A DNA stretch of 64,000 nucleotides from Macrostomum hystrix (Eukaryota > Animalia > Platyhelminthes). The position numbers and the translations under genes are program-made. Under the pieces are notes generated by a model. The model was not told where the DNA came from. It saw only the letters and a list, made by a program, of their open reading frames with translations, and did no database searches. Where the stretch lies: contig CATNEN010000031.1 of NCBI GenBank assembly GCA_950097015.1, positions 1,798,001 through 1,862,000 of the forward strand. The letters run 5' to 3'. The stretch's first letter is position 1; each line of letters begins with the position of its first letter. Shown here in pieces: positions 3,915-64,000 of this stretch.

Positions 3915-4075
3915 TGACACCGGCCCACTCGGGCCGAACGTGCAGCAATGGCACAGCCTTTTAAAGGTTGTGTACAACTAACTGTTCAGTCCGTGGACTG
4001 GGGCGGCCGCCAAAACCACACAAATTTCTATCCCAACTTGTTTTCCTTGGGCTGATATTCGAACTCTCGGTTAAA
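3915..4075 (-). mobile_element. SINE family 2, partial copy
   Basis: The reverse complement shares 'caagttgg...gtgtgg...ccccagtccacggactgaacag' with 41480-41545 and has a GTTCGAAT B-box-like motif. Confidence 0.55.
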
Positions 4076-4186
4076 AGTCTGAAGCTCTAAAAAGTGTGGC
4101 AGAAGCTTTGTGTGTCTAGTGCTAGTCCAGAAATATAACACAGGAAGATACAGGAAGATACAGGAACACGAACATCCGCACAAGCG

Positions 4187-9399: not shown

Positions 9400-27280
<17,881 letters not shown>

Positions 27281-39044: not shown

Positions 39045-39838
39045 TGTCAACTGGGGGATTATTGTCAACTGGGGGATCATTGTCAACTGGGGGATCATTG
39101 TCAACTGGGGGATCACTGTCAACTGTGGGATTATTGTCAACTGGGGGATCATTGTCAACTGGGGGATCATTGTCAACTGGGGGATCATTGTCAACTGGGG
39201 GATCATTGTCAACTGGGGGATCATTGTCAACTGGGGGATCATTGTCAACTGGGGGATCATTGTCAACTGGGGGATCATTGTCAACTGGGGGATCACTGTC
39301 AACTGTGGGATTATTGTCAACTGGGGGATCATTGTCAACTGGGGGATCATTGTCAACTGGGGGATCACTGTCAACTGTGGGATTATTGTCAACTGGGGGA
39401 TCATTGTCAACTGGGGGATCATTGTCAACTGGGGGATCATTGTCAACTGGGGGATCATTGTCAACTGGGGGATCATTGTCAACTGGGGGATCATTGTCAA
39501 CTGTGGGATTATTGTCAACTGGGGGATCATTGTCAACTGTGGGAGTATTGTCAACTGGGGGATCATTGTCAACTGGGGGATCACTGTCAACTGTGGGATT
39601 ATTGTCAACTGTGGGATTATTGTCAACTGGGGAACCATTGTCAACTGGGGAACCATTGTCAACTGTGGGATTATTGTCAACTGGGGGATCATTGTCAACT
39701 GGGGGATCACTGTCAACTGTGGGATTATTGTCAACTGGGGGATCATTGTCAACTGTGGGATTATTGTCAACTGGGGAACCATTGTCAACTGTGGGATTAT
39801 TGTCAACTGGGGGATCATTGTCAACTGGGGGATCATTG
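39045..39838. repeat. 18-bp minisatellite (TGTCAACTGGGGGATCAT), ~44 copies
   Basis: Period 18; it produces the spurious ORFs at 38839-40074. Confidence 0.96.
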
Positions 39839-40599
39839 TAGCTTAAAAAACTGAAAATATAGCTGCTAAAAAGTATACCAGACGAATTAAAAATATATCT
39901 GCTCCCTGAAGGGGGGCAAAACTTGCTAGTTGCATCTAAAAATGGTCTAACCTGAGTAGTTTTTGAGCACTTTGTCATAGAAATTTCGAGTTTAGGCCAT
40001 TGTTTTAGGTTAGCATTAAATAATACTTTGTAGTAGCCTCGAAATGTTTGAACTTGCAGAATCAGCAGGGTCAATTTTACAGGGCATCATTTTTAACCAA
40101 GCAAGTTGCCTTAATACTCTCTGATTTGTCAAATTTCGAAGTGGAGATTTAGGGACTCACTCAATTTTGAGTAATTATCCAAAACATCACTAGTTGAAAT
40201 TATCAAAACCATCCCATGGTTATTAATAATGATTATATTCATTTTTTCCCAGTCTGTGAAAAAGCAGTAAATAAAATAAAAAGTTCAAATTAGTGTTACG
40301 TGTCCTTAATTCATTGTGTGCCACTGTACTTGTCTGTCCAGAATTGTTAATTAACAAAACAGCACTCTGTCCATAGCATCAGACTATGAACTAACATTGA
40401 AAGCTATTTATTAATTAAGATAATAAGAAGATTGGCAGACATGACAGCAAAGCAAAACTAGACAGCAATGTGATTATGATAATTAATTTGTTTCACGTGA
40501 ATAATAAACGTGCAGCGGAACCAAAGTACTTTTTGTGAGCCGATACTGTAACAAACACGTACTCACAAGCTTGACATTGTGATTGAACCGAAACTTAAA

Positions 40600-43347: not shown

Positions 43348-44391
43348 GGTATAAGCAGTGCTGGAATGATTTATTGCTGCTGGACTGCAGAAACCTAGAT
43401 GCTTTAAATGGATGCTTCTTACAGAAGTTATATGGTTAGCTACTTAGCCATCACCCAGACTTATTGGGAAAAATGGAATGTGTAACTTTTCTGCATTCTA
43501 CTTAATATTCTACGCTACTATGAAAGTGATTTTGTATTTATTATTATATCTGCTGTACTAATTATCTTTGCTAACAAATATTGGTGACAGATTTAGACTG
43601 ACAAAGATAAAAAGAGTAAAATACCAGCATTTAAACAAAAACATCAGTTTAGCCATTCATAACATACATGCGCAACACCCGTCTGAGTGCCAAGCAAGGT
43701 AAGTCGCAAAAACCAATCAACCAAGCGCAAAAAAATCAAAGGGGGGACCAAGGGACAAAAAAGGAAGGCGTGATGAAAAGGAAAAAGGGGAGAGAAAAAG
43801 AGAGCAAATGAGAGCAAACTAAGTCGTAAATAGAGCAATGAAATGAACTAAGTCGCAAATGAGAGCAAACTAAGTCGTAAATAGAGCAAAAACTAAGTCG
43901 CACAGCCGGCTAAGATTTGGGAGGTTGCACATGTATGATTCATAAGACAACTGAACTGATCTCTTTTGGTCAGAAACTAAATAAAGCAACACAACATGTT
44001 GCTGCTGTAACAGATATAAAGCATGGTTGGTCCATTTATGTTTCAATTAAAGTTAAATTCCTAAAGAATGTGGTAGGCACTGTTTGAATTTTAAAAGCTG
44101 AAAAGCCAAAGACAACCTGCTATATTTGATGACATAGGAAAGCACCAAATTAACAAAAACTAACTGAGAATCCATAGAAAAAAGTTAACACTTAGATCAA
44201 CAAAGCCGCTAACCTGAGGCCATAGTTGCATTTTAGAATTTTTGGGCTGCCTGTGTAACTGTTCCACTGTCCTTTCCTATGTGCAAAATAAAAATGCATT
44301 TTAGATCAGTTTAAGTTGCAACTTTACCCAAAAAATGGGCAAAAAATTGTTCTTTTTCTTTAATCAAAATTTAGTTTGATTAATTTATGGG

Positions 44392-44730
44392 GGTCAATGG
44401 CAGAACAGTTAATAGATTTGCCTCACACACCACAGTCCCAAAGTTGATTCCATGGTGAGGCCACATTTATTTGGGGCACAGACATGGAGAGAAGGCTTAG
44501 GGGCTTGTGAAATTTATGCCATTAAGGGCCAACCTAGGCATAATGAAGTGTACACTGCCTAATGACGAGAAAGTCAGGGCAGATGTACACACCTGTGTGA
44601 GCATATGCCTGCATATGCCTATAGTATCTGTGTGCATATGTTGCTGAGGAGTTAGCAACCTGGGCAGAATTGCCTCCTTGCTGGCTGTGGGTCTAGTGTC
44701 ACCAAATGAGATAATGAGATGTAATAATTA
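44392..44730 (+). mobile_element. SINE family 1 copy h (CpG-decayed), upstream of RCC1
   Basis: Degenerate head plus 'gtgtacactgcctaatgacgagaaagtcagggcagatgtacacacctgtgtgag...ggtctagtgtcacc'. Confidence 0.78.
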
Positions 44731-45714
44731 TTTTTATTAGATTAAATCCCAGATTTTTTGTTTCTCTAATTTGTAGTACCTATTATATTTTGAATCAATT
44801 ATATAGGCCTAGTCATTAATTACTATTAATAATAATGATTATAACAAAGTAAACAAAAATGCAGCATCAAATCATCATACATATAATAGTAATAAAAATT
44901 ATGATAACAGTGATAACAATATTGATAATCATTTTTCAAACAGTAACTTTGACAAGTCCCTTCAGAAATTATCATTAAGAGTGTTGTTATGTGTAAATTC
45001 TTAGCAAAATATTGCTTACTCACTTATCAAAACTTTCAAATTTAATATTTAATAAGGTAAAAGGTGGATAAGATCAAGATCAGAACTTCAGAGGCTCTTG
45101 GAGATCTAAATTATTGATTAGGGCCTATATGTCATGAGAGAAAGGGGAGATCAAAACTGTTCAGTGCAAATTAGCTAAGCATAACCCAGCCCAACACAGG
45201 GGCCTTTTAATTTTATATAAACGTAGGAAAATGTCCAATATTAAACGTCTATACTTCCAGTACCAGAACCAGTACCAGAACCAGTACCAGAAAAAAATTA
45301 TGTTATAGCCAACAAAAAATCGACAAGCAACTAATAAAAAGACTTCTAACAGATGAAATACTTATATATCGGTCCGAAAATATCATTATTGAGAATAAAA
45401 TTAATAAATATCGACGGACTTGCGCACAACACACAAAGAATCGTTTACTTTCACAAAACGTTTTCTAATATATGTTTTTCATAGAATAAAACAAATTTGC
45501 TCAACCAACTAAGTAAACGAATACAAAAAGCGGTTTACTAAATATCGCAACTACTAAAATAACAACTCAAAACTCACCTCATTAAATGTGTTTGTATAAT
45601 TTATTATTTTTATAATCATCGTAAACTTCATCAAAAAAACTAAAAATATAACCTCACTTTTGCGCTTCGCAGGATTATTACTCGTACATGATATACAGCT
45701 GAGAGCAATGATAA

Positions 45715-48700
45715 GGAAGGAAACATTATCTGTGAACACGGCTGTAAAATTTCAGAGCCCTGACTAGTCGCGTCTCGGAGTTGTAGACCCTCGAGTCCCC
45801 CCCACTCTGATATCTCCCATTTTAAAAGTACTTTTCGTCACCTCACTGAATCTGGTGGTCAGACGAGGCTGAAAACTCAGATCTGGAAGGAAACATTATC
45901 TGTGAATACGGCTGTAAAATTTCAGAGCCCTGACTAGTCGCGTCTCGAAGTTGTAGACCCTCGAGTCCCCCCCACTCTGATATCTCCCATTTTAAAAGTA
46001 CTTTTCGTCACCTCACTGAATCTGGTGGTCAAAAAAAGCTGAAATCTCAGATCTGGAAGGAAACATTATCTGTGAACACGGCTGTAAAATTTCAGAGCCC
46101 TGACTAGTCGCGTCTCGGAGTTGTAGACCCTCGAGTCCCCCCCACTCTGATATCTCCCATTTTAAAAGTACTTTTCGTCACCTCACTGAATCTGGTGGTC
46201 AGACGAGGCTAAAAACTCAGATCTGGAAGGAAACATTATCTGTAAACACGGCTGTAAAATTTCAGAGCCCTGACTAGTCGCGTCTCGGAGTTGTAGACCC
46301 TCGAGTCCCCCCCACTCTGATATCTCCCATTTTAAAAGTACTTTTCGTCACCTCACTGAATCTGGTGGTCAGACGAGGCTGAAAACTCAGATCTGGAAGG
46401 AAACATTATCTGTGAATACGGCTGTAAAATTTCAGAGCCCTGACTAGTCGCGTCTCGGAGTTGTAGACCCTCGAGTCCCCCCCACTCTGATATCTCCCAT
46501 TTTAAAAGTACTTTTCGTCACCTCACTGAATCTGGTGGTCAGACGAGGCTGAAAACTCAGATCTGGAAGGAAACATTATCTGTGAATACGGCTGTAAAAT
46601 TTCAGAGCCCTGACTAGTCGCGTCTCGAAGTTGTAGACCCTCGAGTCCCCCCCACTCTGATATCTCCCATTTTTAAAGTACTTTTCGTCACCTCACTGAA
46701 TCTGGTGGTCAAAAAAAGCTGAAATCTCAGATCTGGAAGGAAACATTATCTGTGAACACGGCTGTAAAATTTCAGAGCCCTGACTAGTCGCGTCTCGGAG
46801 TTGTAGACCCTCGAGTCCCCCCCACTCTGATATCTCCCATTTTAAAAGTACTTTTCGTCACCTCACTGAATCTGGTGGTCAAAAAAAGCTGAAAACTCAG
46901 ATCTGAAAGGAAACATTATCTGTGAACACGGCTGTAAAATTTCAGAGCCCTGACTAGTCGCGTCTCGGAGTTGTAGACCCTCGAGTCCCCCCCACTCTGA
47001 TATCTCCCATTTTAAAAGTACTTTTCGTCACCTCACTGAATCTGGTGGTCAGACGAGGCTGAAAACTCAGATCTGGAAGGAAACATTATCTGTGAACACG
47101 GCTGTAAAATTTCAGAGCCCTGACTAGTCGCGTCTCGGAGTTGTAGACCCTCGAGTCCCCCCCACTCTGATATCTCCCATTTTAAAAGTACTTTTCGTCA
47201 CCTCACTGAATCTGGTGGTCAGACGAGGCTGAAAACTCAAATCTGGAAGGAAACATTATCTGTGAACACGGCTGTAAAATTTCAGAGCCCTGACTAGTCG
47301 CGTCTCGGAGTTGTAGACCCTCGAGTCCCCCCCACTCTGATATCTCCCATTTTAAAAGTACTTTTCGTCACCTCACTGAATCTGGTGGTCAAAAAAAGCT
47401 GAAATCTCAGATCTGGAAGGAAACATTATCTGTGAATAACGTTCTAAAATTTCAGAGCCCTGACTAGTCGCGTCTCGAAGTTGTAGACCCTCGAGTCCCC
47501 CCCACTCTGATATCTCCCATTTTAAAAGTACTTTTCGTCACCTCACTGAATCTGGTGGTCAAAAAAAGCTGAAATCTCAGATCTGGAAGGAAACATTATC
47601 TGTGAACACGGCTGTAAAATTTCAGAGCCCTGACTAGTCGCGTCTCGGAGTTGTAGACCCTCGAGTCCCCCCCACTCTGATATCTCCCATTTTAAAAGTA
47701 CTTTTCGTCACCTCACTGAATCTGGTGGTCAGACGAGGCTGAAAACTCAGATCTGGAAGGAAACATTATCTGTGAATACGGCTGTAAAATTTCAGAGCCC
47801 TGACTAGTCGCGTCTCGAAGTTGTAGACCCTCGAGTCCCCCCCACTCTGATATCTCCCATTTTAAAAGTACTTTTCGTCACCTCACTGAATCTGGTGGTC
47901 AAAAAAAGCTGAAATCTCAGATCTGGAAGGAAACATTATCTGTGAACACGGCTGTAAAATTTCAGAGCCCTGACTAGTCGCGTCTCGGAGTTGTAGACCC
48001 TCGAGTCCCCCCCACTCTGATATCTCCCATTTTAAAAGTACTTTTCGTCACCTCACTGAATCTGGTGGTCAAAAAAAGCTGAAATCTCAGATCTGGAAGG
48101 AAACATTATCTGTGAACACGGCTGTAAAATTTCAGAGCCCTGACTAGTCGCGTCTCGGAGTTGTAGACCCTCGAGTCCCCCCCACTCTGATATCTCCCAT
48201 TTTAAAAGTACTTTTCGTCACCTCACTGAATCTGGTGGTCAGACGAGGCTGAAAACTCAGATCTGGAAGGAAACATTATCTGTGAATACGGCTGTAAAAT
48301 TTCAGAGCCCTGACTAGTCGCGTCTCGAAGTTGTAGACCCTCGAGTCCCCCCCACTCTGATATCTCCCATTTTAAAAGTACTTTTCGTCACCTCACTGAA
48401 TCTGGTGGTCAAAAAAAGCTGAAATCTCAGATCTGGAAGGAAACATTATCTGTGAACACGGCTGTAAAATTTCAGAGCCCTGACTAGTCGCGTCTCGGAG
48501 TTGTAGACCCTCGAGTCCCCCCACTCTGATATCTCCCATTTTAAAAGTACTTTTCGTCACCTCACTGAATCTGGTGGTCAGACGAGGCTAAAAACTCAGA
48601 TCTGGAAGGAAACATTATCTGTAAACACGGCTGTAAAATTTCAGAGCCCTGACTAGTCGCGTCTCGGAGTTGTAGACCCTCGAGTCCCCCCCACTCTGAT

Positions 48701-51700
48701 ATCTCCCATTTTAAAAGTACTTTTCGTCACCTCACTGAATCTGGTGGTCAGACGAGGCTAAAAACTCAGATCTGGAAGGAAACATTATCTGTAAACACGG
48801 CTGTAAAATTTCAGAGCCCTGACTAGTCGCGTCTCGGAGTTGTAGACCCTCGAGTCCCCCCCACTCTGATATCTCCCATTTTAAAAGTACTTTTCGTCAC
48901 CTCACTGAATCTGGTGGTCAGACGAGGCTGAAAACTCAGATCTGGAAGGAAACATTATCTGTGAATACGGCTGTAAAATTTCAGAGCCCTGACTAGTCGC
49001 GTCTCGAAGTTGTAGACCCTCGAGTCCCCCCCACTCTGATATCTCCCATTTTAAAAGTACTTTTCGTCACCTCACTGAATCTGGTGGTCAAAAAAAGCTG
49101 AAATCTCAGATCTGGAAGGAAACATTATCTGTGAACACGGCTGTAAAATTTCAGAGCCCTGACTAGTCGCGTCTCGGAGTTGTAGACCCTCGAGTCCCCC
49201 CCACTCTGATATCTCCCATTTTAAAAGTACTTTTCGTCACCTCACTGAATCTGGTGGTCAGACGAGGCTAAAAACTCAGATCTGGAAGGAAACATTATCT
49301 GTAAACACGGCTGTAAAATTTCAGAGCCCTGACTAGTCGCGTCTCGGAGTTGTAGACCCTCGAGTCCCCCCCACTCTGATATCTCCCATTTTAAAAGTAC
49401 TTTTCGTCACCTCACTGAATCTGGTGGTCAGACGAGGCTGAAATCTCAGATCTGGAAGGAAACATTATCTGTGAATACGGCTGTAAAATTTCAGAGCCCT
49501 GACTAGTCGCGTCTCGGAGTTGTAGACCCTCGAGTCCCCCCCACTCTGATATCTCCCATTTTAAAAGTACTTTTCGTCACCTCACTGAATCTGGTGGTCA
49601 GACGAGGCTGAAAACTCAGATCTGGAAGGAAACATTATCTGTGAATACGGCTGTAAAATTTCAGAGCCCTGACTAGTCGCGTCTCGAAGTTGTAGACCCT
49701 CGAGTCCCCCCCACTCTGATATCTCCCATTTTTAAAGTACTTTTCGTCACCTCACTGAATCTGGTGGTCAAAAAAAGCTGAAATCTCAGATCTGGAAGGA
49801 AACATTATCTGTGAACACGGCTGTAAAATTTCAGAGCCCTGACTAGTCGCGTCTCGGAGTTGTAGACCCTCGAGTCCCCCCCACTCTGATATCTCCCATT
49901 TTAAAAGTACTTTTCGTCACCTCACTGAATCTGGTGGTCAAAAAAAGCTGAAAACTCAGATCTGAAAGGAAACATTATCTGTGAACACGGCTGTAAAATT
50001 TCAGAGCCCTGACTAGTCGCGTCTCGGAGTTGTAGACCCTCGAGTCCCCCCCACTCTGATATCTCCCATTTTAAAAGTACTTTTCGTCACCTCACTGAAT
50101 CTGGTGGTCAGACGAGGCTGAAAACTCAGATCTGGAAGGAAACATTATCTGTGAACACGGCTGTAAAATTTCAGAGCCCTGACTAGTCGCGTCTCGGAGT
50201 TGTAGACCCTCGAGTCCCCCCCACTCTGATATCTCCCATTTTAAAAGTACTTTTCGTCACCTCACTGAATCTGGTGGTCAGACGAGGCTGAAAACTCAGA
50301 TCTGGAAGGAAACATTATCTGTGAATACGGCTGTAAAATTTCAGAGCCCTGACTAGTCGCGTCTCGGAGTTGTAGACCCTCGAGTCCCCCCCACTCTGAT
50401 ATCTCCCATTTTAAAAGTACTTTTCGTCACCTCACTGAATCTGGTGGTCAGACGAGGCTGAAAACTCAGATCTGGAAGGAAACATTATCTGTGAATACGG
50501 CTGTAAAATTTCAGAGCCCTGACTAGTCGCGTCTCGAAGTTGTAGACCCTCGAGTCCCCCCCACTCTGATATCTCCCATTTTTAAAGTACTTTTCGTCAC
50601 CTCACTGAATCTGGTGGTCAAAAAAAGCTGAAATCTCAGATCTGGAAGGAAACATTATCTGTGAACACGGCTGTAAAATTTCAGAGCCCTGACTAGTCGC
50701 GTCTCGGAGTTGTAGACCCTCGAGTCCCCCCCACTCTGATATCTCCCATTTTAAAAGTACTTTTCGTCACCTCACTGAATCTGGTGGTCAAAAAAAGCTG
50801 AAAACTCAGATCTGAAAGGAAACATTATCTGTGAACACGGCTGTAAAATTTCAGAGCCCTGACTAGTCGCGTCTCGGAGTTGTAGACCCTCGAGTCCCCC
50901 CCACTCTGATATCTCCCATTTTAAAAGTACTTTTCGTCACCTCACTGAATCTGGTGGTCAGACGAGGCTGAAAACTCAGATCTGGAAGGAAACATTATCT
51001 GTGAACACGGCTGTAAAATTTCAGAGCCCTGACTAGTCGCGTCTCGGAGTTGTAGACCCTCGAGTCCCCCCCACTCTGATATCTCCCATTTTAAAAGTAC
51101 TTTTCGTCACCTCACTGAATCTGGTGGTCAGACGAGGCTGAAAACTCAAATCTGGAAGGAAACATTATCTGTGAACACGGCTGTAAAATTTCAGAGCCCT
51201 GACTAGTCGCGTCTCGGAGTTGTAGACCCTCGAGTCCCCCCCACTCTGATATCTCCCATTTTAAAAGTACTTTTCGTCACCTCACTGAATCTGGTGGTCA
51301 AAAAAAGCTGAAATCTCAGATCTGGAAGGAAACATTATCTGTGAATAACGTTCTAAAATTTCAGAGCCCTGACTAGTCGCGTCTCGAAGTTGTAGACCCT
51401 CGAGTCCCCCCCACTCTGATATCTCCCATTTTAAAAGTACTTTTCGTCACCTCACTGAATCTGGTGGTCAAAAAAAGCTGAAATCTCAGATCTGGAAGGA
51501 AACATTATCTGTGAACACGGCTGTAAAATTTCAGAGCCCTGACTAGTCGCGTCTCGGAGTTGTAGACCCTCGAGTCCCCCCCACTCTGATATCTCCCATT
51601 TTAAAAGTACTTTTCGTCACCTCACTGAATCTGGTGGTCAGACGAGGCTGAAAACTCAGATCTGGAAGGAAACATTATCTGTGAATACGGCTGTAAAATT

Positions 51701-54700
51701 TCAGAGCCCTGACTAGTCGCGTCTCGAAGTTGTAGACCCTCGAGTCCCCCCCACTCTGATATCTCCCATTTTAAAAGTACTTTTCGTCACCTCACTGAAT
51801 CTGGTGGTCAAAAAAAGCTGAAATCTCAGATCTGGAAGGAAACATTATCTGTGAACACGGCTGTAAAATTTCAGAGCCCTGACTAGTCGCGTCTCGGAGT
51901 TGTAGACCCTCGAGTCCCCCCCACTCTGATATCTCCCATTTTAAAAGTACTTTTCGTCACCTCACTGAATCTGGTGGTCAGACGAGGCTGAAAACTCAAA
52001 TCTGGAAGGAAACATTATCTGTGAACACGGCTGTAAAATTTCAGAGCCCTGACTAGTCGCGTCTCGGAGTTGTAGACCCTCGAGTCCCCCCCACTCTGAT
52101 ATCTCCCATTTTAAAAGTACTTTTCGTCACCTCACTGAATCTGGTGGTCAAAAAAGCTGAAATCTCAGATCTGGAAGGAAACATTATCTGTGAACACGGC
52201 TGTAAAATTTCAGAGCCCCGACTAGTCGCGTCTCGGAGTTGTAGACCCTCGAGTCCCCCCCACTCTGATATCTCCCATTTTAAAAGTACTTTTCGTCACC
52301 TCACTGAATCTGGTGGTCAGACGAGGCTGAAAACTCAGATCTGGAAGGAAACATTATCTGTGAACACGGCTGTAAAATTTCAGAGCCCTAACTAGTCGCG
52401 TCTCGGAGTTGTAGACCCTCGAGTCCCCCCCACTCTGATATCTCCCATTTTAAAAGTACTTTTCGTCACCTCACTGAATCTGGTGGTCAGACGAGGCTGA
52501 CAACTCAGATCTGGAAGGAAACATTATCTGTGAACACGGCTGTAAAATTTCAGAGACCTGACTAGTCGCGTCTCGGAGTTGTAGACCCTCGAGTCCCCCC
52601 CCACTCTGATATCTCCCATTTTAAAAGTACTTTTCGTCACCTCACTGAATCTGGTGGTCAAAAAAAGCTGAAATCTCAGATCTGGAAGGAAACATTATCT
52701 GTGAACACGGCTGTAAAATTTCAGAGCCCTGACTAGTCGCGTCTCGGAGTTGTAGACCCTCGAGTCCCCCCCACTCTGATATCTCCCATTTTAAAAGTAC
52801 TTTTCGTCACCTCACTGAATCTGGTGGTCAGACGAGGCTGACAACTCAGATCTGGAAGGAAACATTATCTGTGAACACGGCTGTAAAATTTCAGAGACCT
52901 GACTAGTCGCGTCTCGGAGTTGTAGACCCTCGAGTCCCCCCCACTCTGATATCTCCCATTTTAAAAGTACTTTTCGTCACCTCACTGAATCTGGTGGTCA
53001 GACGAGGCTGAAAACTCAGATCTGGAAGGAAACATTATCTGTGAACACGGCTGTAAAATTTCAGAGCCCTAACTAGTCGCGTCTCGAAGTTGTAGACCCT
53101 CGAGTCCCCCCCACTCTGATATCTCCCATTTTAAAAGTACTTTTCGTCACCTCACTGAATCTGGTGGTCAAAAAAAGCTGAAAACTCAGATCTGGAAGGA
53201 AACATTATCTGTGAACACGGCTGTAAAATTTCAGAGCCCCGACTAGTCGCGTCTCGGAGTTGTAGACCCTCGAGTCCCCCCCACTCTGATATCTCCCATT
53301 TTAAAAGTACTTTTCGTCACCTCACTGAATCTGGTGGTCAGACGAGGCTGAAAACTCAGATCTGGAAGGAAACATTATCTGTGAACACGGCTGTAAAATT
53401 TCAGAGCCCTGACTAGTCGCGTCTCGGAGTTGTAGACCCTCGAGTCCCCCCCACTCTGATATCTCCCATTTTAAAAGTACTTTTCGTCACCTCACTGAAT
53501 CTGGTGGTCAGACGAGGCTGAAAACTCAAATCTGGAAGGAAACATTATCTGTGAACACGGCTGTAAAATTTCAGAGCCCTGACTAGTCGCGTCTCGGAGT
53601 TGTAGACCCTCCAGTCCCCCCCACTCTGATATCTCCCATTTTAAAAGTACTTTTCGTCACCTCACTGAATCTGGTGGTCAGACGAGGCTGAAAACTCAGA
53701 TCTGGAAGGAAACATTATCTGTGAACACGGCTGTAAAATTTCAGAGCCCTGACTAGTCGCGTCTCGGAGTTGTAGACCCTCGAGTCCCCCCCACTCTGAT
53801 ATCTCCCATTTTAAAAGTACTTTTCGTCACCTCACTGAATCTGGTGGTCAAAAAAAGCTAAAAACTCAGATCTGGAAGGAAACATTATCTGTGAACACGG
53901 CTGTAAAATTTCAGAGCCCTGACTAGTCGCGTCTCGAAGTTGTAGACCCTCGAGTCCCCCCCACTCTGATATCTCCCATTTTAAAAGTACTTTTCGTCAC
54001 CTCACTGAATCTGGTGGTCAAAAGAAGCTGAAAACTCAGATCTGGAAGGAAACATTATCTGTGAACACGGCTGTAAAATTTCAGAGCCCTGACTAGTCGC
54101 GTCTCGGAGTTGTAGACCCTCGAGTCCCCCCCACTCTGATATCTCCCATTTTAAAAGTACTTTTCGTCACCTCACTGAATCTGGTGGTCAGACGAGGCTG
54201 AAAACTCAGATCTGGAAGGAAACATTATCTGTGAACACGGCTGTAAAATTTCAGAGCCCTGACTAGTCGCGTCTCGGAGTTGTAGACCCTCGAGTCCCCC
54301 CCACTCTGATATCTCCCATTTTAAAAGTACTTTTCGTCACCTCACTGAATCTGGTGGTCAGACGAGGCTGAAAACTCAAATCTGGAAGGAAACATTATCT
54401 GTGAACACGGCTGTAAAATTTCAGAGCCCTGACTAGTCGCGTCTCGGAGTTGTAGACCCTCGAGTCCCCCCCACTCTGATATCTCCCATTTTAAAAGTAC
54501 TTTTCGTCACCTCACTGAATCTGGTGGTCAAAAAAAGCTGAAATCTCAGATCTGGAAGGAAACATTATCTGTGAATAACGTTCTAAAATTTCAGAGCCCT
54601 GACTAGTCGCGTCTCGAAGTTGTAGACCCTCGAGTCCCCCCCACTCTGATATCTCCCATTTTAAAAGTACTTTTCGTCACCTCACTGAATCTGGTGGTCA

Positions 54701-54931
54701 AAAAAAGCTGAAATCTCAGATCTGGAAGGAAACATTATCTGTGAACACGGCTGTAAAATTTCAGAGACCTGACTAGTCGCGTCTCGGAGTTGTAGACCCT
54801 CGAGTCCCCCCCACTCTGATATCTCCCATTTTAAAAGTACTTTTCGTCACCTCACTGAATCTGGTGGTCAGACGAGGCTGAAAACTCAGATCTGGAAGGA
54901 AACATTATCTGTGAACACGACTGTAAAATTT
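45715..54931 (+). repeat. Left arm: 170-bp satellite array, ~54 near-identical monomers
   Basis: 'aaacattatc' recurs at 45721, 45891, 46061...; two main spacer variants (AGACGAGGCT and AAAAAAAGCT). Confidence 0.98.
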
Positions 54932-55377
54932 TTCAAGTTTGTGGAAGAATCTGAAAAAGGAGGTTTTGAAGGAGCTATTGTTTCTGTAGTTTTTTTTTCG
55001 TTTTTTCAGTTTGTTTCGATTTAGCCTAATATAATATAAGTTTTTCTTTTGGTATATTTTTCGTGAGCCCTCCTCTTTTTGAAACCAGGCTTGGGACTGG
55101 CTTAGGCAGAGTTTTTCACAAAGTCTTTAATACATTTTTAGTTTTAGTTTTTTGTAAGATTTTTGTTTTTTTTAAGCGTTTTGTTGGTTTTAGTGTTTTT
55201 GTTTCACACAAAAGCCAATATTTACGAGTAGATAAGTCTTACAATATTTTGCAGCTTAGATTATTCACAGTTTTACATGCAAACCGGTGGTATAATTTTT
55301 TACAGAATTGACTTGTCCTTATTAAAAAACTACAGATTTGACATTTCATTTTTAAGCAAGTAGCTTTTAGTAATTAG

Positions 55378-55383
55378 TTTATT
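55378..55383 (-). promoter_or_regulatory. Candidate polyadenylation signal (AATAAA) of the transposase transcript
   Basis: TTTATT on the plus strand, ~32 nt downstream of the stop codon at 55415. Confidence 0.45.
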
Positions 55384-55414
55384 TTTTCACTGCACTCTTG
55401 GTGCATCCATCCAG

Positions 55415-58400
55415 CTATCGCGTTGCTGCGTACTCGGCGCAGCAGCAGACGTAGCCGTTGGACGCGTGGCGCTGGTGCATATCTTTCGATGCACACTCAT
55501 GGTGCAGCCATGAATCACAAAGATCACATTGCAGCCAAGTTCCAGTCGCACTGGGTTCAGCTTCATGACAGCGAACGCACGAGTTGGTGGATTCTTCATT
55601 TTCTCTTTCCAAGTCTTTCCAGATGCAGATTCGAGCTCTGTTAAGAAATCCCTCCGTCGTTGGAAAGCACAAAGCTCGGAACTCGGTATCAACGGATGTT
55701 ACTAGAACTTTCGCGTACAGACAGACAAATACACCACAGCTATGACCATCAAACTGCAATGATCTCAACATTGATTTATTTTTATACGTACCTAAAATTT
55801 CTGGCATGTCTTCGCGAATACTGGCGGTGCTTTGGATTAGGTTTTGCCATAGTTTTATAAAATGTTTTGGTATCGACTTATCTGAGATAGGTTTTGTGTC
55901 TAGGACAGCTAATTCTTTGCGTGTTGTGTCAATATAGACTAAGTAGAAGTGGTCGTTCTGAAGGATCGGACAGATCAAACGGGTGCATTTGTTTGAAACT
56001 GTCGCTCTTAGCATTTCAATTGCAGCGCTCGAATCTCCTTTGCGAATGCAGCTAAAGAAGCTAGATGGTAGGTGGCCCGCTTTGCTGTTTGGGTTGCATA
56101 CGCAAAGTAGATGTATGAATGAATTTACTACTCCGACAGAAAGCCACTTTCCGGGTTCCAATGATTGTCTATCAAACTCAGTTAGGAAATCTCCAGCGCG
56201 GGTGCACCACACCTGTTCCCGTTCTGCTGTGCCTTGCTGCTTTCTATTCTTTGTCGCTGATTCTGTTCTCTGTCGCTTGTACTTTGAACGACTAACCCGC
56301 TCGGCCCTTCGCCACTCCTCGCGAGAAAAAGAAATATCTTCGTGCTTTCTCTTCCTTCCAGATAAAGTTGCTTTTCCCACTTTGTTGATTATGTCAAAGG
56401 CTGTTAATCTTGTTTTTAAATATTTTAACCGTCCGCAAATAAAACTCGACACGTTCACCCTGGAAGCCTTGCCGAACCTTGTTTTTCGAGATTTAACGTC
56501 AGAAAAGTACGATTCTACATAAGAGTTTGAAAACCAACTTTTATTCTTTCTGAAGCTCTTGATACTCCCGATGAAATGGCAGAACAATGGAGCTAAACTA
56601 CACCAGTGCTTCAGCAAGTAAACCAGAAGTTTTGGTGAGTAATAGCTTTTAAATGGCCCGGCTGGCTCGTCGGTTGCATCAATACTTGCCTGTCGGGACT
56701 TAAAAAGAAAAATGTACGGAGAGCTTTCGCGCAGAGAAGCAAATCGAGAACTTTCGGCCTGCTCTTCCTTATTGTTATTTATTTCATCGTCGTTGTAGAG
56801 CAAATATTCTTCGTCCACGGGCTCAGTTTCCCAATTGTTAATCGCTGATCTTAATTCTTTCGGATCTCGCTGCCCTAAAAATGTATCTACAGTCAGACTC
56901 AAGGTAGTTTCAAACGCTTCAAAAGTCTCCTGATGCAATAAAAAAACGAATGCGCTAATAAATAATTCCCGCATAGCTTTACCTTCCGCAGTTTTAGACT
57001 TTAGTTGTATGCCATTAATGAACGCACGGATTACGTGATTTGTGCAAATGAATGGAATCGTGTACTTGATTTGTTTCCCCATGCGTAACGCACAATGCGT
57101 ATCAATAAGGTATTGCTCTAAGCTAGTGCCAAATGACTGGCATACCGAATGTAACATAGCCCAAGAGAAGTCCGTGACGATGACAGCGGGTAAATAGTCA
57201 TGCGACATAATTGTACTGCTTGCTAGTGTGCCCAAATCTGCGCGGACAGAAAACAAAAAGTGTTGGATTGATTTGGTCCTATGCTCACTTGTTATCATTT
57301 CGGCCACAGGCACACCACGCGTCTGACCGTTATCGGAGGGCATTGTCAGCGAGTAAAGAAATATTTGGCTACCTGCGAAATTCATTCTCTTGAAAATGCT
57401 TCCAGTGGCATCTAGATGTAAAACACACTGCGGCCTACTTGTAACAAGTCTAAGCTGTCTTTCGAGGTACAGATGTACATGAAATGGATGGCGAGACACA
57501 GCTTGAATGTATCCGCGTATACTCTTACTCTCTGTGTCTGTTTCGCTCAGTATTCGTTGCAAAGCAGCAATTTCGACTTCAACATTTTTATGCAGCCGTT
57601 CTTCTGCGGCCACCAACCGCTTCGCGTTTACCCGCCGAATGGCATCCAAATTTTTCGATCGAGAAAAATCATTTTCCTTTATCTCTTTATCTGTCATTTC
57701 CGAGAGTAGTCTATCATGTACATCAGTTGGTGCTTCAGTTTCAAGTAGTTTTGCTATCCTTTCTGATTCTAATGGCGTCATTCTAGACATCGTTGGATGA
57801 TTATGATTCTTCTCACCTTTAGAATTAACAACTACCTCCACAGGCTCATTTTCAGTTGGAAAATCTATAATTCTAAAATCGTGTACTATTTTGCATGCGG
57901 GATGCTGGCATAATGCGACCTGTTTTACGAAATATTTTGGCTTTAGTGCTCTGAGATTTGGAAAGTTCACATATCGATTTTTAAATTTTAGAACACAGTT
58001 ACTTGCTTCCACATTCAAAGAGCAATATTGTCGATAATTTTCACGAATGCAGTTTAGCCACCAAAGAGCGGTTCTCTGACATATCGAATGCATTTTTTCT
58101 CCCCGCCTGATAAAAAAGTTACTTTTCCACTGTCTCCAAGCTATTCGAAAATGAAAAATTAAATTAGTCATTGATTCGCTTTCACCACTCTCGAAATCAG
58201 CACCAACTTCAGCATTAGTAAAATCCCTTACTTCTGAATCATCACTCCCAGCATCATCACTCCCAGAAGCACTCATATCATCACTCCCAGCATCATCACT
58301 CACAGCATCATCTCTCCCAGCATCAACACTCCCAGCGTCATCACTCCCAGCATCAACACTCCCAGCGTCATCACTCCCAGCATCAACACTCCCAGCGTCA

Positions 58401-60001
58401 TCACTCCCAGCTTCAACACTCCCAGCGTCATCACTCCCAGCTTCAACACTCCCAGCGTCATCACTCCCAGCTTCAACACTCCCAGCTTCAACACTCCCAG
58501 CGTCATCACTCCCAGCATCAACACTCCCAGCGTCATCACTCCCAGCATCAACACTCCCAGCGTCATCACTCCCAGCTTCAACACTCCCAGCGTCATCACT
58601 CCCAGCTTCAACACTCCCAGCGTCATCACTCCCAGCATCAACACTCCCAGCGTCATCACTCCCGGCATCAACACTCCCAGCGTCATCACTCCCAGCATCA
58701 ACACTCCCAGCGTCATCACTCTCAGCGTCATCACTCTCAGCGTCATCACTCTCAGCGTCATCACTCCCAGCTTCAACACTCCCAGCATCATTACTCCCAG
58801 AATCACTCATATCATCACCACCAGCATCATCACTTCCACGAGCAGGCCCCACAGAAGCAGCAACAGCACCACGGGCAGGCACAGCAGAAGCAGCAACAGC
58901 ACGACGGGCAGGCACAGCAGAAGCAGCAACAGCACGACGGGCAGGCAGAACAGAAGCAGCAACAGCACGACGGGCAGGCACAGCAGAAGCAGCAACAGCA
59001 CCACGGGCAGGCACAGCAGAAGCAGCAACAGCACCACGGGCAGGCACTGCAGAAGCAGCAACAGCACGACGGGCAGGCACAGCAGAAGCAGCAACAGCAC
59101 CACGGGCAGGCACAGCAGAAGCAGCAACAGCACCACGGGCAGGCACAGCAGAAGCAGCAACAGCACCACGGGCAGGCACAGCAGAAGCAGCAACAGCACG
59201 ACGGGCAGGCAGAACAGAAGCAGCAACAGCACGACGGGCAGGCACAGCAGAAGCAGCAACAGCACCACGGGCAGGCACTGCAGAAGCAGCAACAGCACGA
59301 CGGGCAGGCACAGCAGAAGCAGCAACAGCACCACGGGCAGGCACAGCAGAAGCAGCAACAGCACCAGGGGCAGGCACAGCAGAAGCAGCAACAGCACGAC
59401 GGGCAGGCACACCAGAAGCAGCAACAGCACCAGGGGCAGGCACAGCAGAAGCAGCAACAGCACGACGGGCAGGCACAGCAGAAGCAGCAACAGCACGACG
59501 GGCAGGCACAGCAGAAGCAGCAACAGCACCACGGGCATGCACAGCAGAAGCAGCAACAGCACCACGGGCAGGCACAACAGAAGCAGCAACAGCACGACGG
59601 GCAGGCACAACAGAAGCAGCAACAGCACCACGGGCAGGCACAGCAGAAGCAGCAACAGCACCACGGGCAGGCACAACAGAAGCAGCAACAGCACGACGGG
59701 CAGGCACAACAGAAGCAGCAACAGCACCTCGAGTGGATCTTACGACAGCAGATTTATGATAAGCAGTATTCTTACTTTTCGAAACAGAAGATTTTGACTT
59801 ACCGAATATTTTACGCTGATAATACAGCCAGACAACTCGACGGTTTTCAATAGTGTTCTTTGCTGAAAGCTTGCTCAGAATTTGCCCGCAAGCACCATAG
59901 GGACAGCGAAATGATTTGCGAAGGCACTCATCACTATAGTCTTCAAAATATTCAGGCGACAGTTCAAAAAAGAAATGCGTCGATTGTGGGTTGCTTTGCA
60001 A
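55415..60001 (-). CDS. Putative transposase polyprotein: low-complexity N-terminus, C-x4-C...H-x-H Zn motif, MULE DDE domain, Ulp1/C48 peptidase, PHD finger (up to 1528 aa; start unresolved)
   Basis: HLDATG (D ~57411), VTDFSWA (D ~57171), CTNH (CxxH ~57040), SNSYVES (E ~56514); protease WLSVGVVN, DHFY (H ~55950), LDT (D ~55899), QFDGHSCGVF (C ~55737); PHD C-x2-C...C-x2-C-x4-H-x2-C...C. No stop in 4.6 kb. The ORF-track start is TTG; the first in-frame ATG is at 58810. Confidence 0.88.
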   Translation of the reverse strand: MQSNPQSTHFFFELSPEYFEDYSDECLRKSFRCPYGACGQILSKLSAKNTIENRRVVWLYYQRKIFGKSKSSVSKSKNTAYHKSAVVRSTRGAVAASVVPARRAVAASVVPARGAVAASAVPARGAVAASVVPARRAVAASVVPARGAVAASAVHARGAVAASAVPARRAVAASAVPARRAVAASAVPAPGAVAASGVPARRAVAASAVPAPGAVAASAVPARGAVAASAVPARRAVAASAVPARGAVAASAVPARRAVAASVLPARRAVAASAVPARGAVAASAVPARGAVAASAVPARGAVAASAVPARRAVAASAVPARGAVAASAVPARGAVAASAVPARRAVAASVLPARRAVAASAVPARRAVAASAVPARGAVAASVGPARGSDDAGGDDMSDSGSNDAGSVEAGSDDAESDDAESDDAESDDAGSVDAGSDDAGSVDAGSDDAGSVDAGSDDAGSVEAGSDDAGSVEAGSDDAGSVDAGSDDAGSVDAGSDDAGSVEAGSVEAGSDDAGSVEAGSDDAGSVEAGSDDAGSVDAGSDDAGSVDAGSDDAGSVDAGRDDAVSDDAGSDDMSASGSDDAGSDDSEVRDFTNAEVGADFESGESESMTNLIFHFRIAWRQWKSNFFIRRGEKMHSICQRTALWWLNCIRENYRQYCSLNVEASNCVLKFKNRYVNFPNLRALKPKYFVKQVALCQHPACKIVHDFRIIDFPTENEPVEVVVNSKGEKNHNHPTMSRMTPLESERIAKLLETEAPTDVHDRLLSEMTDKEIKENDFSRSKNLDAIRRVNAKRLVAAEERLHKNVEVEIAALQRILSETDTESKSIRGYIQAVSRHPFHVHLYLERQLRLVTSRPQCVLHLDATGSIFKRMNFAGSQIFLYSLTMPSDNGQTRGVPVAEMITSEHRTKSIQHFLFSVRADLGTLASSTIMSHDYLPAVIVTDFSWAMLHSVCQSFGTSLEQYLIDTHCALRMGKQIKYTIPFICTNHVIRAFINGIQLKSKTAEGKAMRELFISAFVFLLHQETFEAFETTLSLTVDTFLGQRDPKELRSAINNWETEPVDEEYLLYNDDEINNNKEEQAESSRFASLRESSPYIFLFKSRQASIDATDEPAGPFKSYYSPKLLVYLLKHWCSLAPLFCHFIGSIKSFRKNKSWFSNSYVESYFSDVKSRKTRFGKASRVNVSSFICGRLKYLKTRLTAFDIINKVGKATLSGRKRKHEDISFSREEWRRAERVSRSKYKRQRTESATKNRKQQGTAEREQVWCTRAGDFLTEFDRQSLEPGKWLSVGVVNSFIHLLCVCNPNSKAGHLPSSFFSCIRKGDSSAAIEMLRATVSNKCTRLICPILQNDHFYLVYIDTTRKELAVLDTKPISDKSIPKHFIKLWQNLIQSTASIREDMPEILGTYKNKSMLRSLQFDGHSCGVFVCLYAKVLVTSVDTEFRALCFPTTEGFLNRARICIWKDLERENEESTNSCVRCHEAEPSATGTWLQCDLCDSWLHHECASKDMHQRHASNGYVCCCAEYAATR
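58242..58810. repeat. In-frame 15/30-bp coding repeat (DDAGS / VDAGS) inside the transposase ORF
   Basis: Direct reading and translation. Confidence 0.92.
58826..59729. repeat. In-frame 33-bp coding repeat (AVAASAVPAR[G/R]), ~27 copies, inside the transposase ORF
   Basis: Period 33; the reading frame is preserved throughout. Confidence 0.94.
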
Positions 60002-60613
60002 ATGCAGAAAATTGAAAGTAAAGCAATGATGCGAAGACTGAAAATCATGGTTAAAAATACGCTCGTATATTGATATACTAGCAGACGATTGAAATCAGCT
60101 TTTCTGAAGGCTTTATACTCGAGAATTTATGCATGGCTTGTTCGGATAGGGATATGAGATAGCAAGCAAAAAGCATATAAAGCAGCTGATTGGATAGCCC
60201 AGCTACTAGTGTAAAACAGAGCACGGTACACACCCAAGTACACTTATTTTGTCAGGCATTAAATTAGCAATAAAGCATAAGGACAAAGCACTAATAACTA
60301 AATGCAATAGAGGATAAGCAATCGACACTATAAAATTCGAAGCAACATGCACACATGAGGCTTGAAATCTCAACACTCAACTTCAAACGCTAAAGCCTCA
60401 AAAGCCGACAAACATAAGAGGGCATTAGTACTTCAAAGAATAAAAAACAATAGCAAAAACCAGATCCAACATGCAAAATAAAGACCTATGTGCACGACAA
60501 GGCAAAAAATTATCCTGCATTACCAATTGCGCAATACATCTCAACACTTCACGCAACTCAACGCTGACAATACGCAGGCATCTCAGAGTGAGGGTGTTGT
60601 ATTGTGCCCACTA

Positions 60614-63600
60614 TAAAATGGGAGATATCAGAGTGGGGGGGACTCGAGGGTCTACAACTCCGAAACGCGACTAGTTAGGGCTCTGAAATTTTACAGCCGT
60701 GTTCACAGATAATGTTTCCTTCCAGATCTGAGTTTTCAGCCTCGTCTGACCACCAGATTCAGTGAGGTGACGAAAAGTACTTTTAAAATGGGAGATATCA
60801 GAGTGGGGGGGACTCGAGGGTCTACAACTCCGAGACGCGACTAGTCAGGGCTCTGAAATTTTACAGCCGTGTTCACAGATAATGTTTCCTTCCAGATCTG
60901 AGTTTTCAGCCTCGTCTGACCACCAGATTCAGTGAGGTGACGAAAAGTACTTTTAAAATGGGAGATATCAGAGTGGGGGGGGACTCGAGGGTCTACAACT
61001 CCGAGACGCGACTAGTCAGGTCTCTGAAATTTTACAGCCGTGTTCACAGATAATGTTTCCTTCCAGATCTGAGTTGTCAGCCTCGTCTGACCACCAGATT
61101 CAGTGAGGTGACGAAAAGTACTTTTAAAATGGGAGATATCAGAGTGGGGGGGACTCGAGGGTCTACAACTCCGAGACGCGACTAGTTAGGGCTCTGAAAT
61201 TTTACAGCCGTGTTCACAGATAATGTTTCCTTCCAGATCTGAGTTTTCAGCCTCGTCTGACCACCAGATTCAGTGAGGTGACGAAAAGTACTTTTAAAAT
61301 GGGAGATATCAGAGTGGGGGGGACTCGAGGGTCTACAACTCCGAGACGCGACTAGTCGGGGCTCTGAAATTTTACAGCCGTGTTCACAGATAATGTTTCC
61401 TTCCAGATCTGAGATTTCAGCTTTTTTTGACCACCAGATTCAGTGAGGTGACGAAAAGTACTTTTAAAATGGGAGATATCAGAGTGGGGGGGACTCGAGG
61501 GTCTACAACTCCGAGACGCGACTAGTCAGGGCTCTGAAATTTTACAGCCGTGTTCACAGATAATGTTTCCTTCCAGATCTGAGTTTTCAGCTTTTTTTGA
61601 CCACCAGATTCAGTGAGGTGACGAAAAGTACTTTTAAAATGGGAGATATCAGAGTGGGGGGGACTCGAGGGTCTACAACTCCGAGACGCGACTAGTTAGG
61701 GCTCTGAAATTTTACAGCCGTGTTCACAGATAATGTTTCCTTCCAGATCTGAGTTTTCAGCCTCGTCTGACCACCAGATTCAGTGAGGTGACGAAAAGTA
61801 CTTTTAAAATGGGAGATATCAGAGTGGGGGGGACTCGAGGGTCTACAACTTCGAGACGCGACTAGTCAGGGCTCTGAAATTTTACAGCCGTATTCACAGA
61901 TAATGTTTCCTTCCAGATTTAAGTTTTCAGCCTCGTCTGACCACCAGATTCAGTGAGGTGACGAAAAGTACTTTTAAAATGGGAGATATCAGAGTGGGGG
62001 GGACTCGAGGGTCTACAACTCCGAGACGCGACTAGTCAGGGCTCTGAAATTTTACAGCCGTGTTCACAGATAATGTTTCCTTCCAGATCTGAGATTTCAG
62101 CTTTTTTTGACCACCAGATTCAGTGAGGTGACGAAAAGTACTTTTAAAATGGGAGATATCAGAGTGGGGGGGACTCGAGGGTCTACAACTCCGAGACGCG
62201 ACTAGTCAGGGCTCTGAAATTTTACAGCCGTGTTCACAGATAATGTTTCCTTCCAGATTTGAGTTTTCAGCCTCGTCTGACCACCAGATTCAGTGAGGTG
62301 ACGAAAAGTACTTTTAAAATGGGAGATATCAGAGTGGGGGGGACTCGAGGGTCTACAACTCCGAGACGCGACTAGTCAGGGCTCTGAAATTTTACAGCCG
62401 TGTTCACAGATAATGTTTCCTTCCAGATCTGAGTTTTCAGCCTCGTCTGACCACCAGATTCAGTGAGGTGACGAAAAGTACTTTTAAAATGGGAGATATC
62501 AGAGTGGGGGGGACTCGAGGGTCTACAACTCCGAGACGCGACTAGTCGGGGCTCTGAAATTTTACAGCCGTGTTCACAGATAATGTTTCCTTCCAGATCT
62601 GAGTTTTCAGCTTTTTTTGACCACCAGATTCAGTGAGGTGACGAAAAGTACTTTTAAAATGGGAGATATCAGAGTGGGGGGGACTCGAGGGTCTACAACT
62701 TCGAGACGCGACTAGTTAGGGCTCTGAAATTTTACAGCCGTGTTCACAGATAATGTTTCCTTCCAGATCTGAGTTTTCAGCCTCGTCTGACCACCAGATT
62801 CAGTGAGGTGACGAAAAGTACTTTTAAAATGGGAGATATCAGAGTGGGGGGGACTCGAGGGTCTACAACTCCGAGACGCGACTAGTCAGGTCTCTGAAAT
62901 TTTACAGCCGTGTTCACAGATAATGTTTCCTTCCAGATCTGAGTTGTCAGCCTCGTCTGACCACCAGATTCAGTGAGGTGACGAAAAGTACTTTTAAAAT
63001 GGGAGATATCAGAGTGGGGGGGACTCGAGGGTCTACAACTCCGAGACGCGACTAGTCAGGGCTCTGAAATTTTACAGCCGTGTTCACAGATAATGTTTCC
63101 TTCCAGATTTGAGTTTTCAGCCTCGTCTGACCACCAGATTCAGTGAGGTGACGAAAAGTACTTTTAAAATGGGAGATATCAGAGTGGGGGGGACTCGAGG
63201 GTCTACAACTCCGAGACGCGACTAGTCAGGGCTCTGAAATTTTACAGCCGTGTTCACAGATAATGTTTCCTTCCAGATCTGAGTTTTCAGCCTCGTCTGA
63301 CCACCAGATTCAGTGAGGTGACGAAAAGTACTTTTAAAATGGGAGATATCAGAGTGGGGGGGACTCGAGGGTCTACAACTCCGAGACGCGACTAGTCGGG
63401 GCTCTGAAATTTTACAGCCGTGTTCACAGATAATGTTTCCTTCCAGATCTGAGTTTTCAGCTTTTTTTGACCACCAGATTCAGTGAGGTGACGAAAAGTA
63501 CTTTTAAAATGGGAGATATCAGAGTGGGGGGGACTCGAGGGTCTACAACTCCGAGACGCGACTAGTCAGGGCTCTGAAATTTTACAGCCGTGTTCACAGA

Positions 63601-64000
63601 TATTGTTTCCTTCCAGATCTGAGTTTTCAGCTTTTTTTGACCACCAGATTCAGTGAGGTGACGAAAAGTACTTTTAAAATGGGAGATATCAGAGTGGGGG
63701 GGACTCGAGGGTCTACAACTCCGAGACGCGACTAGTCAGGGCTCTGAAATTTTACAGCCGTGTTCACAGATAATGTTTCCTTCCAGATCTGAGATTTCAG
63801 CTTTTTTTGACCACCAGATTCAGTGAGGTGACGAAAAGTACTTTAAAAATGGGAGATATCAGAGTGGGGGGGACTCGAGGGTCTACAACTTCGAGACGCG
63901 ACTAGTCAGGGCTCTGAAATTTTACAGCCGTATTCACAGATAATGTTTCCTTCCAGATCTGAGTTTTCAGCCTCGTCTGACCACCAGATTCAGTGAGGTG
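60614..64000 (-). repeat. Right arm: the same 170-bp satellite in inverted orientation, at least ~20 monomers, truncated by the window end
   Basis: Monomer is the reverse complement of the left-arm monomer. Confidence 0.98.

Follow-up and report, generated by a model that had tools for sequence, protein, structure and literature searches.

A probable foldback-type DNA transposon of the NOF/Rehavkus branch, with satellite-array arms, in the flatworm Macrostomum hystrix

A stretch of 64,000 nucleotides from the genome of Macrostomum hystrix (contig CATNEN010000031.1, positions 1,798,001 to 1,862,000; hereafter the window) very probably holds a DNA transposon of the foldback type, a member of the NOF/Rehavkus branch within the Mutator (MULE/IS256) superfamily. 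Its arms are arrays of a 170-bp satellite, and its right end lies beyond the window. Proceeding from the left, we distinguish the following parts (positions are those of the window; TRF, Tandem Repeats Finder; ORF, open reading frame):

45245 to 45696, plus strand: outer (terminal) domain of the left arm, non-satellite and AT-rich, delimited by word depth and by its uniqueness in the window
45697 to 54931, plus strand: left arm, a partial monomer (45697 to 45714) followed by 54 monomers of 170 bp, with multi-monomer blocks duplicated inside (TRF, inverted pairs)
54932 to 55414, minus strand: inner spacer, presumed 3' untranslated region, without a mirror copy across the gene
55415 to 60001, minus strand: open frame of 1528 codons including the stop (ORF listing)
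60002 to 60613, minus strand: unique region separating the 5' side of the frame from the right arm, presumably promoter and 5' leader
60614 to 64000, minus strand: right arm, the 170-bp satellite in inverted orientation, at least 20 monomers, continuing beyond the window (TRF, inverted pairs)

The left array was reported by TRF as 54.2 copies of the 170-bp unit at 45715-54931 (96% matches), and the right one as 19.9 copies of the reverse-complement unit at 60614-64000 (97% matches), running past the window end; similarity of the left arm to the satellite actually starts at 45697, with a degenerate partial monomer. The two arrays are joined by inverted pairs of up to 3025 nt with 97-98% complementarity. 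An initial annotation, made from the letters alone, had described a 170-bp array on the left, the same array inverted on the right and a single uninterrupted 4.6-kb ORF between them, and all three agree with what we find. Taking a conserved 22-mer as anchor, the spacing of the monomers is 170 bp, the exceptions being three spacings of 169 or 171 bp in the left arm and one of 171 bp in the right arm. The monomer consensus (45715-45884) contains five palindromic 6-bp sites (SpeI, XhoI, EcoRV, ScaI and BglII) and a C7 run, and the 170-bp ladder that had been expected with these five enzymes is consistent at the level of that consensus. The segments lying between the arrays and the frame on the inner left and the inner right are unrelated to each other and have no counterpart in the rest of the window. 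An exact scan of Joint Genome Institute (JGI) metagenome contigs for the monomer and an Rfam scan of the whole window both gave zero matches.

The order of the monomers ties the two arms together. Classified by identical sequence, the 73 complete monomers fall into 29 types; 16 of these recur, and 11 of the recurring types are found in both arms. Read from the outer to the inner end, the left arm is composed of the types ADLMHFGIBCJADCADQRMDLSHFGIAHFGIBCJADBTENUOKPEBVWXABCJK, and the visible part of the right arm of the types FGYEBOKPEBCZabCENcA. Within the left arm the block HFGIBCJAD is present twice and the block HFGI three times. Beyond identical single monomers, the arms have in common the five-monomer block OKPEB and the run formed by E, N and a 171-mer, in mirror order and at unequal distances from the centre. 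Monomers of the left arm are on average 97.2% identical to one another and those of the right arm 97.4%; monomers compared across the arms, at 97.3%, are just as alike. These identities and blocks fit a growth of the arrays by unequal exchange or slippage of 0.7-1.5 kb blocks, and the likeness of the arms fits either ongoing exchange between them or recent common descent.

The left end of the element was located by mapping k-mer contigs from public sequencing runs to positions 43600-45960 and contrasting word depths between neighbouring bins; as these depths are assembler values and not copy numbers, only the contrast between neighbouring bins was used. Depth in run X1 is 50-90 over 43995-44389 and 44785-45179, rises to 1200-5100 over 45180-45653 and reaches 250,000-320,000 in the array, while in run X2 it passes from 4.8-4.9 in the flank to 84-505 in the outer domain. 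The satellite stands thousands-fold over baseline in runs X1 and X3. A single-copy X1 contig fits 44901-45244 and then continues with 39 letters that differ from the window, and a single-copy X2 contig, identical to the window, stops at 45273, which is k-1 bases past 45243/45244. Since the contigs of both runs break there, the left boundary of the repeated unit falls at about 45245, a few bases either way, and this is most likely the left end of the element. The initial annotation had set that end at 45715; word depth moves it outwards, and the step agrees with a further proposal of the same annotation, namely that ~45200-45714 is a unique terminal segment belonging to the element. The outer domain thus delimited (45245-45696, about 450 bp) opens with a 12-bp unit repeated three times (45257-45292), stands at about 15-40 times flank depth in two runs and has no second copy in the window. 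An X1 contig of depth 917 (45544-45708) leads from the outer domain into the degenerate first partial monomer. Because the single-copy X1 contig leaves the window sequence at 45244, this particular insertion may be absent from the X1 sample.

The otherwise single-copy flank holds two very high-copy dispersed repeats, at 43679-43994 and 44390-44784, where X1 word depth is 100,000 to 1,100,000 against the baseline of 50-90. The former contains a 22-bp tandem unit, AACTAAGTCGCAAATAGAGCAA, with the motif ACTAAGT; copies of the latter show many variable internal deletions and replacements.

From its N-terminal end, the protein encoded between the arms consists of a conserved motif, the repeats of two in-frame minisatellites, a region resembling a zinc finger, the DDE core, a protease of the Ulp1/SENP type and, last, a PHD finger. 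Searching 1.84 billion representative proteins exhaustively with HMMER returned 855 relatives, the best of them with 31% identity and an E-value of 5e-84; the relatives align collinearly over residues 53-647 of a 918-residue core, and the 918 codons of this core are free of stops and frameshifts. Two alignments were used, A1 (the query with 24 relatives) and A2 (the C-terminal 278 residues with 15 relatives), and ORF numbering is core numbering plus 610. Along the gene, from its N-terminal end, the features are:

59741 to 59929, minus strand: conserved N-terminal segment, matching residues 19-81 of a relative, P0002
58836 to 59728, minus strand: 33-bp minisatellite of 27 units, giving repeats of the AVAASAVPARR type in the ORF frame (TRF, translation)
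58238 to 58838, minus strand: 15-bp minisatellite of about 41 units, in frame, giving acidic repeats of the SDDAG type (TRF, translation)
57782 to 58003, minus strand: Cys/His-rich beta-strand region before the core (conserved Cys columns in A1; model strands 61-119)
56372 to 57514, minus strand: DDE (RNase H-like) transposase core (A1, AlphaFold2, Foldseek)
57410 to 57412, minus strand: D864 (core D254, LDATGS; A1)
57170 to 57172, minus strand: D944 (core D334, TDFSW; A1)
57035 to 57046, minus strand: C986 and H989 (core C376 and H379, CTNH; A1)
56513 to 56515, minus strand: E1163 (core E553, VESYF; A1)
55667 to 56209, minus strand: Ulp1/SENP-type (C48) cysteine protease domain (A2 profile)
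55436 to 55576, minus strand: C-terminal PHD-type zinc finger (A2 profile)

The catalytic columns of A1 are invariant or at least 90% conserved, and all of their residues are present here, in line with the earlier observation that D, D, CxxH and E are kept. An AlphaFold2 model built on A1 has a predicted local distance difference test score of 80-95 over residues ~80-600. When this model was compared with the Swiss-Prot models by Foldseek, the first match was the Drosophila 120.7 kDa NOF-FB protein (P16320; E 8e-26), 15 orders of magnitude ahead of the following ones, which are the domesticated ALPHA3, FAR1/FRS and ZSWIM proteins and then the IS256, IS1081 and IS406 transposases (E 1e-11 to 1e-5). 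The best solved structure is that of ISCth4, a transposase of the IS256 family (E 9e-5). Template modelling scores in Foldseek are low (0.14-0.36) because the model has several domains. At a score of 0.98, the nearest ESM Atlas cluster is the one named '120.7 kDa protein in NOF-FB transposable element'; C48 domains occur in 45% and PHD fingers in 34% of its members. In sequence-based searches, Pfam gave zero matches for the core (as 918 or 928 residues) and no family for the zinc-finger-like region or the segment before the repeats; a word-indexed protein search with the single protein returned none, and with the A1 profile two unnamed proteins only; A1 against the PDB sequences likewise gave zero matches. 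The Cys/His-rich region before the core is presumed to be a DNA-binding zinc finger of a WRKY/FLYWCH-like kind.

The C-terminal piece has weak Pfam matches to Peptidase_C48 (E 0.023), PHD (E 0.043) and C1, and its assignment comes from the A2 profile, which matches Ulp1 (1euv) at 4.6e-30 and SENP1/2 at 1e-28 to 1e-22, SENP5 as well, and the PHD fingers of DPF3 and KAT6A at 1e-9 to 1e-7. Pfam recognizes C48 in 12 of the 16 members of A2 and PHD in 9 of the 16. The C48 catalytic residues H1351 and C1422 and the oxyanion residue Q1416 are present on conserved columns of A2, with q748 or q758 (core numbering) as candidates for the catalytic Asp. Some plant MULEs also carry an Ulp1 domain.

Fold, catalytic motifs, the Ulp1 and PHD domains and the multi-copy outer domain and satellite all support the placement already proposed in the initial annotation, that of a Foldback-like Mutator relative of the FB-NOF/Rehavkus type. 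In Drosophila FB-NOF, too, a gene lies between inverted arms of tandem repeats, and P16320 is the closest reviewed protein by predicted fold; identity in the structural alignment is 15%, and this nearness is one of fold and Atlas cluster. FB arms are built of 10-, 20- and 31-bp repeats that reach the ends of the element. Here, in contrast, an outer domain of 450 bp without repeats caps the array, the monomer is 170 bp long and a long open frame is kept, so that the element falls outside the foldbacks in the strict sense. The arm layout of an outer domain followed by a tandem array recalls Tetris of Drosophila virilis, which has an outermost final domain and internal repeats of ~220 bp that also form kilobase satellite-like arrays, and in which no copy encodes a transposase; its target duplication of 8-10 bp suggests a Mutator affinity (PMC4079207). 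Tetris repeats share 37 bp with their own terminal domain, whereas the monomer described here bears no detectable likeness to the outer or inner segments. That the monomer arose out of the terminal domain, on the Tetris model, was considered and set aside, as local alignments to these segments scored no better than shuffled controls.

Rehavkus elements are described as duplicating 9 bp of the target and as containing a minisatellite and one ORF, the transposase having a PHD finger (PMC6446971); they have been placed beside the canonical MULEs, for which they serve as outgroup (PMC6446971; 10.1101/2021.09.26.461848). The element described here likewise has a PHD finger in its transposase, a minisatellite, a single ORF and probably a position beside the canonical MULEs; every Rehavkus trait that is open to test in the window is present, and the Ulp1 domain and the NOF-like fold come in addition. 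The comparison with Rehavkus is one with its published description. The present element differs in its flatworm host, the hosts given for Rehavkus being arthropods and annelids only (PMC6446971), and in its unrelated 170-bp monomer. Rehavkus-like elements of Tribolium have inverted satellite termini of more than 11 kb, an arm counting as many as 50 monomers, and an array of 80 kb derives from Rehavkus (10.1101/2024.12.02.626372). These elements (Rehavkus-1_TC and Rehavkus-3_TC, and the carriers of TfSat06, TfSat23 and TfSat25/TCsat12) resemble ours in their long inverted termini and subterminal satellite arrays; unlike them, the flatworm element keeps a full-length, stop-free transposase-Ulp1-PHD frame between its giant arms and has two minisatellites in frame inside the gene. 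The initial annotation had singled out arm size and homogeneity, in combination with an intact enzyme, as unusual. Arm size as such has its counterpart in the published Tribolium elements, whereas giant homogeneous arms together with a full-length frame are indeed unlike the precedents.

With the canonical MULEs (MuDR, Phantom, Curupira) and with FAR1/FHY3, ZSWIM and ALPHA3 the protein has in common the DDE fold, the CxxH between the second D and the E, and the N-terminal zinc-finger-like region. It departs from the canonical MULEs in having no match to the Pfam families MULE or Transposase_mut and in its kilobase arms, the inverted repeats of canonical MULEs measuring tens to hundreds of bases (PMC6446971).

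Arrays of similar period also accompany the genes of distant relatives, whose loci were taken from metagenome assemblies. The gene of P0002 (locus L001, from a JGI metagenome) is followed at 0.6 kb by a 186-bp array of about 15 units (14208-17143). At a second locus, represented by L003 and L004 together, a 174-bp array of 32 units (L003, 1-5582) lies 3.2 kb upstream of the gene and runs off the contig end, and at L014 another 174-bp array starts 1.9 kb downstream and sits at the contig end (14375-14881). L017 has a 66-bp array, and the Mytilus and Holothuria loci, which belong to more distant relatives, have no arrays nearby. The transposases of the relatives with similar-period arrays are 22-31% identical to the one in the window, and no sequence relationship links the four monomers of 170, 174, 174 and 186 bp.

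Several observations weigh against the assignment. The right terminus, the mirrored outer domain and the target-site duplication would all lie beyond 64000, so the boundaries of the element are known from one side and rest on word depth. Satellite depth in X2 is merely 113 (45733-45890, with flank contigs identical to the window), which is below what would fit the at least 74 monomers present here; filtering or a contig artefact may account for it, as may a real difference between samples. Under a 31-letter rule no contig bridges the junction of outer domain and array, the depth-917 contig extending past it by only 12 letters. On the inner side the arrays lack symmetry: the left one stops at monomer position 38, the right one at about 108. 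None of the relatives' loci shows both inverted arms in the DNA available, most contigs ending before they could. The Pfam families MULE (PF10551) and Transposase_mut (PF00872) have no match in the query at E <=10 and none in the 24 relatives at 0.01, an absence that fits a clade beside the canonical MULEs and not within them. Lastly, none of the 429 in-frame codons that follow the upstream stop is an ATG, the first being codon 398 of the ORF (position 58810), and a search of public RNA runs returned one run, under another organism's label, with 7% of the gene's words and none that clearly contains the gene.

The question of the start bears on how much of the frame is coding. On the minus strand the frame is free of stops from the upstream stop at 60095-60097 down to 55415. 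The 33-bp array has zero stops in all three minus-strand frames, and its openness is therefore uninformative on coding; the 15-bp array is open in the ORF frame only, and the 122 codons upstream of the minisatellites are stop-free in the ORF frame, with 2 and 14 stops in the other two. The N-terminal segment encoded upstream matches the cluster of P0002 (phmmer E 4e-7 to 3e-6) and P0002 itself (pairwise BLASTP E 5e-8), a homology that speaks for coding in the part of the frame that precedes the minisatellites. P0002 is the closest full-length relative, with an identical domain order that includes the N-terminal motif, and has a Met about 18 residues before the aligned stretch. Judged from these comparisons, the long frame, minisatellites included, is probably the true coding sequence; its start may lie in a spliced exon upstream, be a non-AUG codon or have been lost. 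A start supplied by trans-splicing was also considered and rejected: a candidate AG acceptor is found just within the start of the frame, and the donated ATG would be out of frame.

It is quite possible, if not our favoured view, that the family is correctly identified and that this copy is nevertheless non-autonomous, being decaying or defective, deprived of its start or truncated on the right, and mobile in trans if at all. The conserved N-terminal motif does lie upstream of the first ATG, whereas P0002 has its Met before the motif; the lack of an RNA run that clearly contains the gene and the very unequal visible arms (9.2 kb against at least 3.4 kb) point the same way, and FB-NOF of Drosophila is listed as non-autonomous in the passages of PMC4079207 that cite Badal et al. 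2013. On the other hand, the 918-codon core has neither stop nor frameshift and is collinear with its relatives, the DDE and Ulp1 catalytic residues are all kept, and an upstream spliced exon or non-AUG initiation could provide the start. The arms, being 97-98% alike, further suggest a young copy, which counts against decay. The initial annotation had called the transposon apparently intact and possibly autonomous: the stop-free frame and the retained motifs bear out the first description in part, and the missing 5' ATG, the right end outside the window and the lack of an RNA run that clearly contains the gene detract from it; for these same reasons autonomy is not borne out.

We regard it as improbable that the locus is no mobile unit at all, but a domesticated or resident NOF-like gene situated at an inversion point of a pre-existing host 170-bp satellite. 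Such a gene would accord with the unseen right end and target duplication, with the lack of symmetry of the inner array ends and with the array-free surroundings of the Mytilus and Holothuria relatives; moreover, the satellite exceeds the outer domain by about 200:1 in X1, so many arrays may lie outside elements. It would leave unexplained, however, why depth over the outer domain is ~15-40 times that of the flank in two runs and changes sharply at ~45245, why the arms have identical monomer types and a mirrored five-monomer block in common, and why three distant relatives have arrays of like period beside the gene. The surroundings also speak against it, the locus being a euchromatic genic region: the first RCC1 exon has its ATG at 43347 and the minus strand of 40603-42205 codes for the RCC1 repeats, which agrees with the 2.4 kb previously given as the distance of the array upstream of RCC1 and puts the left end of the element 1.9 kb from the start codon. 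An inverted layout produced by the assembly, for example through a long read that is chimeric or folded back on itself, or through the misoriented joining of a collapsed satellite, is very improbable, for although satellite arrays are hard to assemble and the k-mer contigs used cannot span the arms, the layout is more than a palindrome (its 5.7-kb centre is unique and lacks symmetry), the arms are unequal in length, monomer order and end phase, and a like architecture is known from beetles (10.1101/2024.12.02.626372).

In other parts of the window (18234-21157, 37658-38681 and 38839-40074) lie long minisatellites whose period is 16-22 bp or a multiple of that. Several of their frames lack stops, on both strands, which produces spurious ORFs of up to 932 codons; blocks of this sort are typical of this genome in general and can mislead any reading based on ORFs. 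A 277-codon ORF at 28450-29283 on the plus strand, with a C-terminal CxxC...H...C, resembles by eye the tail of a non-LTR (long terminal repeat) retrotransposon ORF2.

If the locus is the foldback-type transposon that we propose, its transposase would bind the outer terminal domains and possibly also sites reiterated in the monomers; reiterated binding sites are argued for Galileo and for MULEs with subterminal repeats in passages of 10.1101/2024.12.02.626372 and PMC4079207. The two ends would then be paired and the element moved by DDE cut-and-paste, leaving a target duplication of ~9 bp. The arrays would lengthen and shorten through unequal exchange or replication slippage of multi-monomer blocks, and exchange between the arms would homogenize both, so that the family would carry a satellite of nucleosome length into new loci and amplify it there. 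The PHD finger may read histone tails, and the Ulp1 domain may act on SUMO-dependent chromatin silencing or on the regulation of the transposase itself; the two domains probably serve chromatin targeting or the countering of silencing.

The near-equal periods of the four arrays (170, 174, 174 and 186 bp), found beside transposases that are at most 31% identical, raise a wider and frankly tentative idea, which we hold to be rather unlikely in its full form: that NOF/Rehavkus foldbacks are a cross-phylum generator and carrier of nucleosome-length satellites, and that the family is currently active in this genome. Were the cross-phylum part true, near-equal periods in unrelated sequences would imply that selection acts on the period and not on the sequence, by way of nucleosome phasing or of the distance between transposase binding sites. 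Present activity is suggested by the coding-competent transposase together with the insertion apparently missing in a second sample; an active family would provide the first autonomous foldback element amenable to experiment.

The origin and dispersal of satellite DNA is a long-standing question, and foldback transposons are among its few documented sources (Tetris, and Rehavkus of Tribolium). The birth and spread of a satellite by way of a foldback transposon is already known, and the element type itself is not new. In the Tetris and Tribolium cases the autonomous partner is missing or poorly characterized; here, arms and a full-length transposase-Ulp1-PHD gene are found in one unit, in a genome that holds roughly tens of copies of the outer domain and thousands of the monomer. 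Being at least 18 kb long and situated 1.9 kb from the RCC1 start codon, on its upstream side, the foldback could also act as a hotspot of rearrangement. The presence of arms and gene in one unit makes transposase sites in the monomers, exchange between the arms and the effect of arm length on mobility testable in the genome of M. hystrix.

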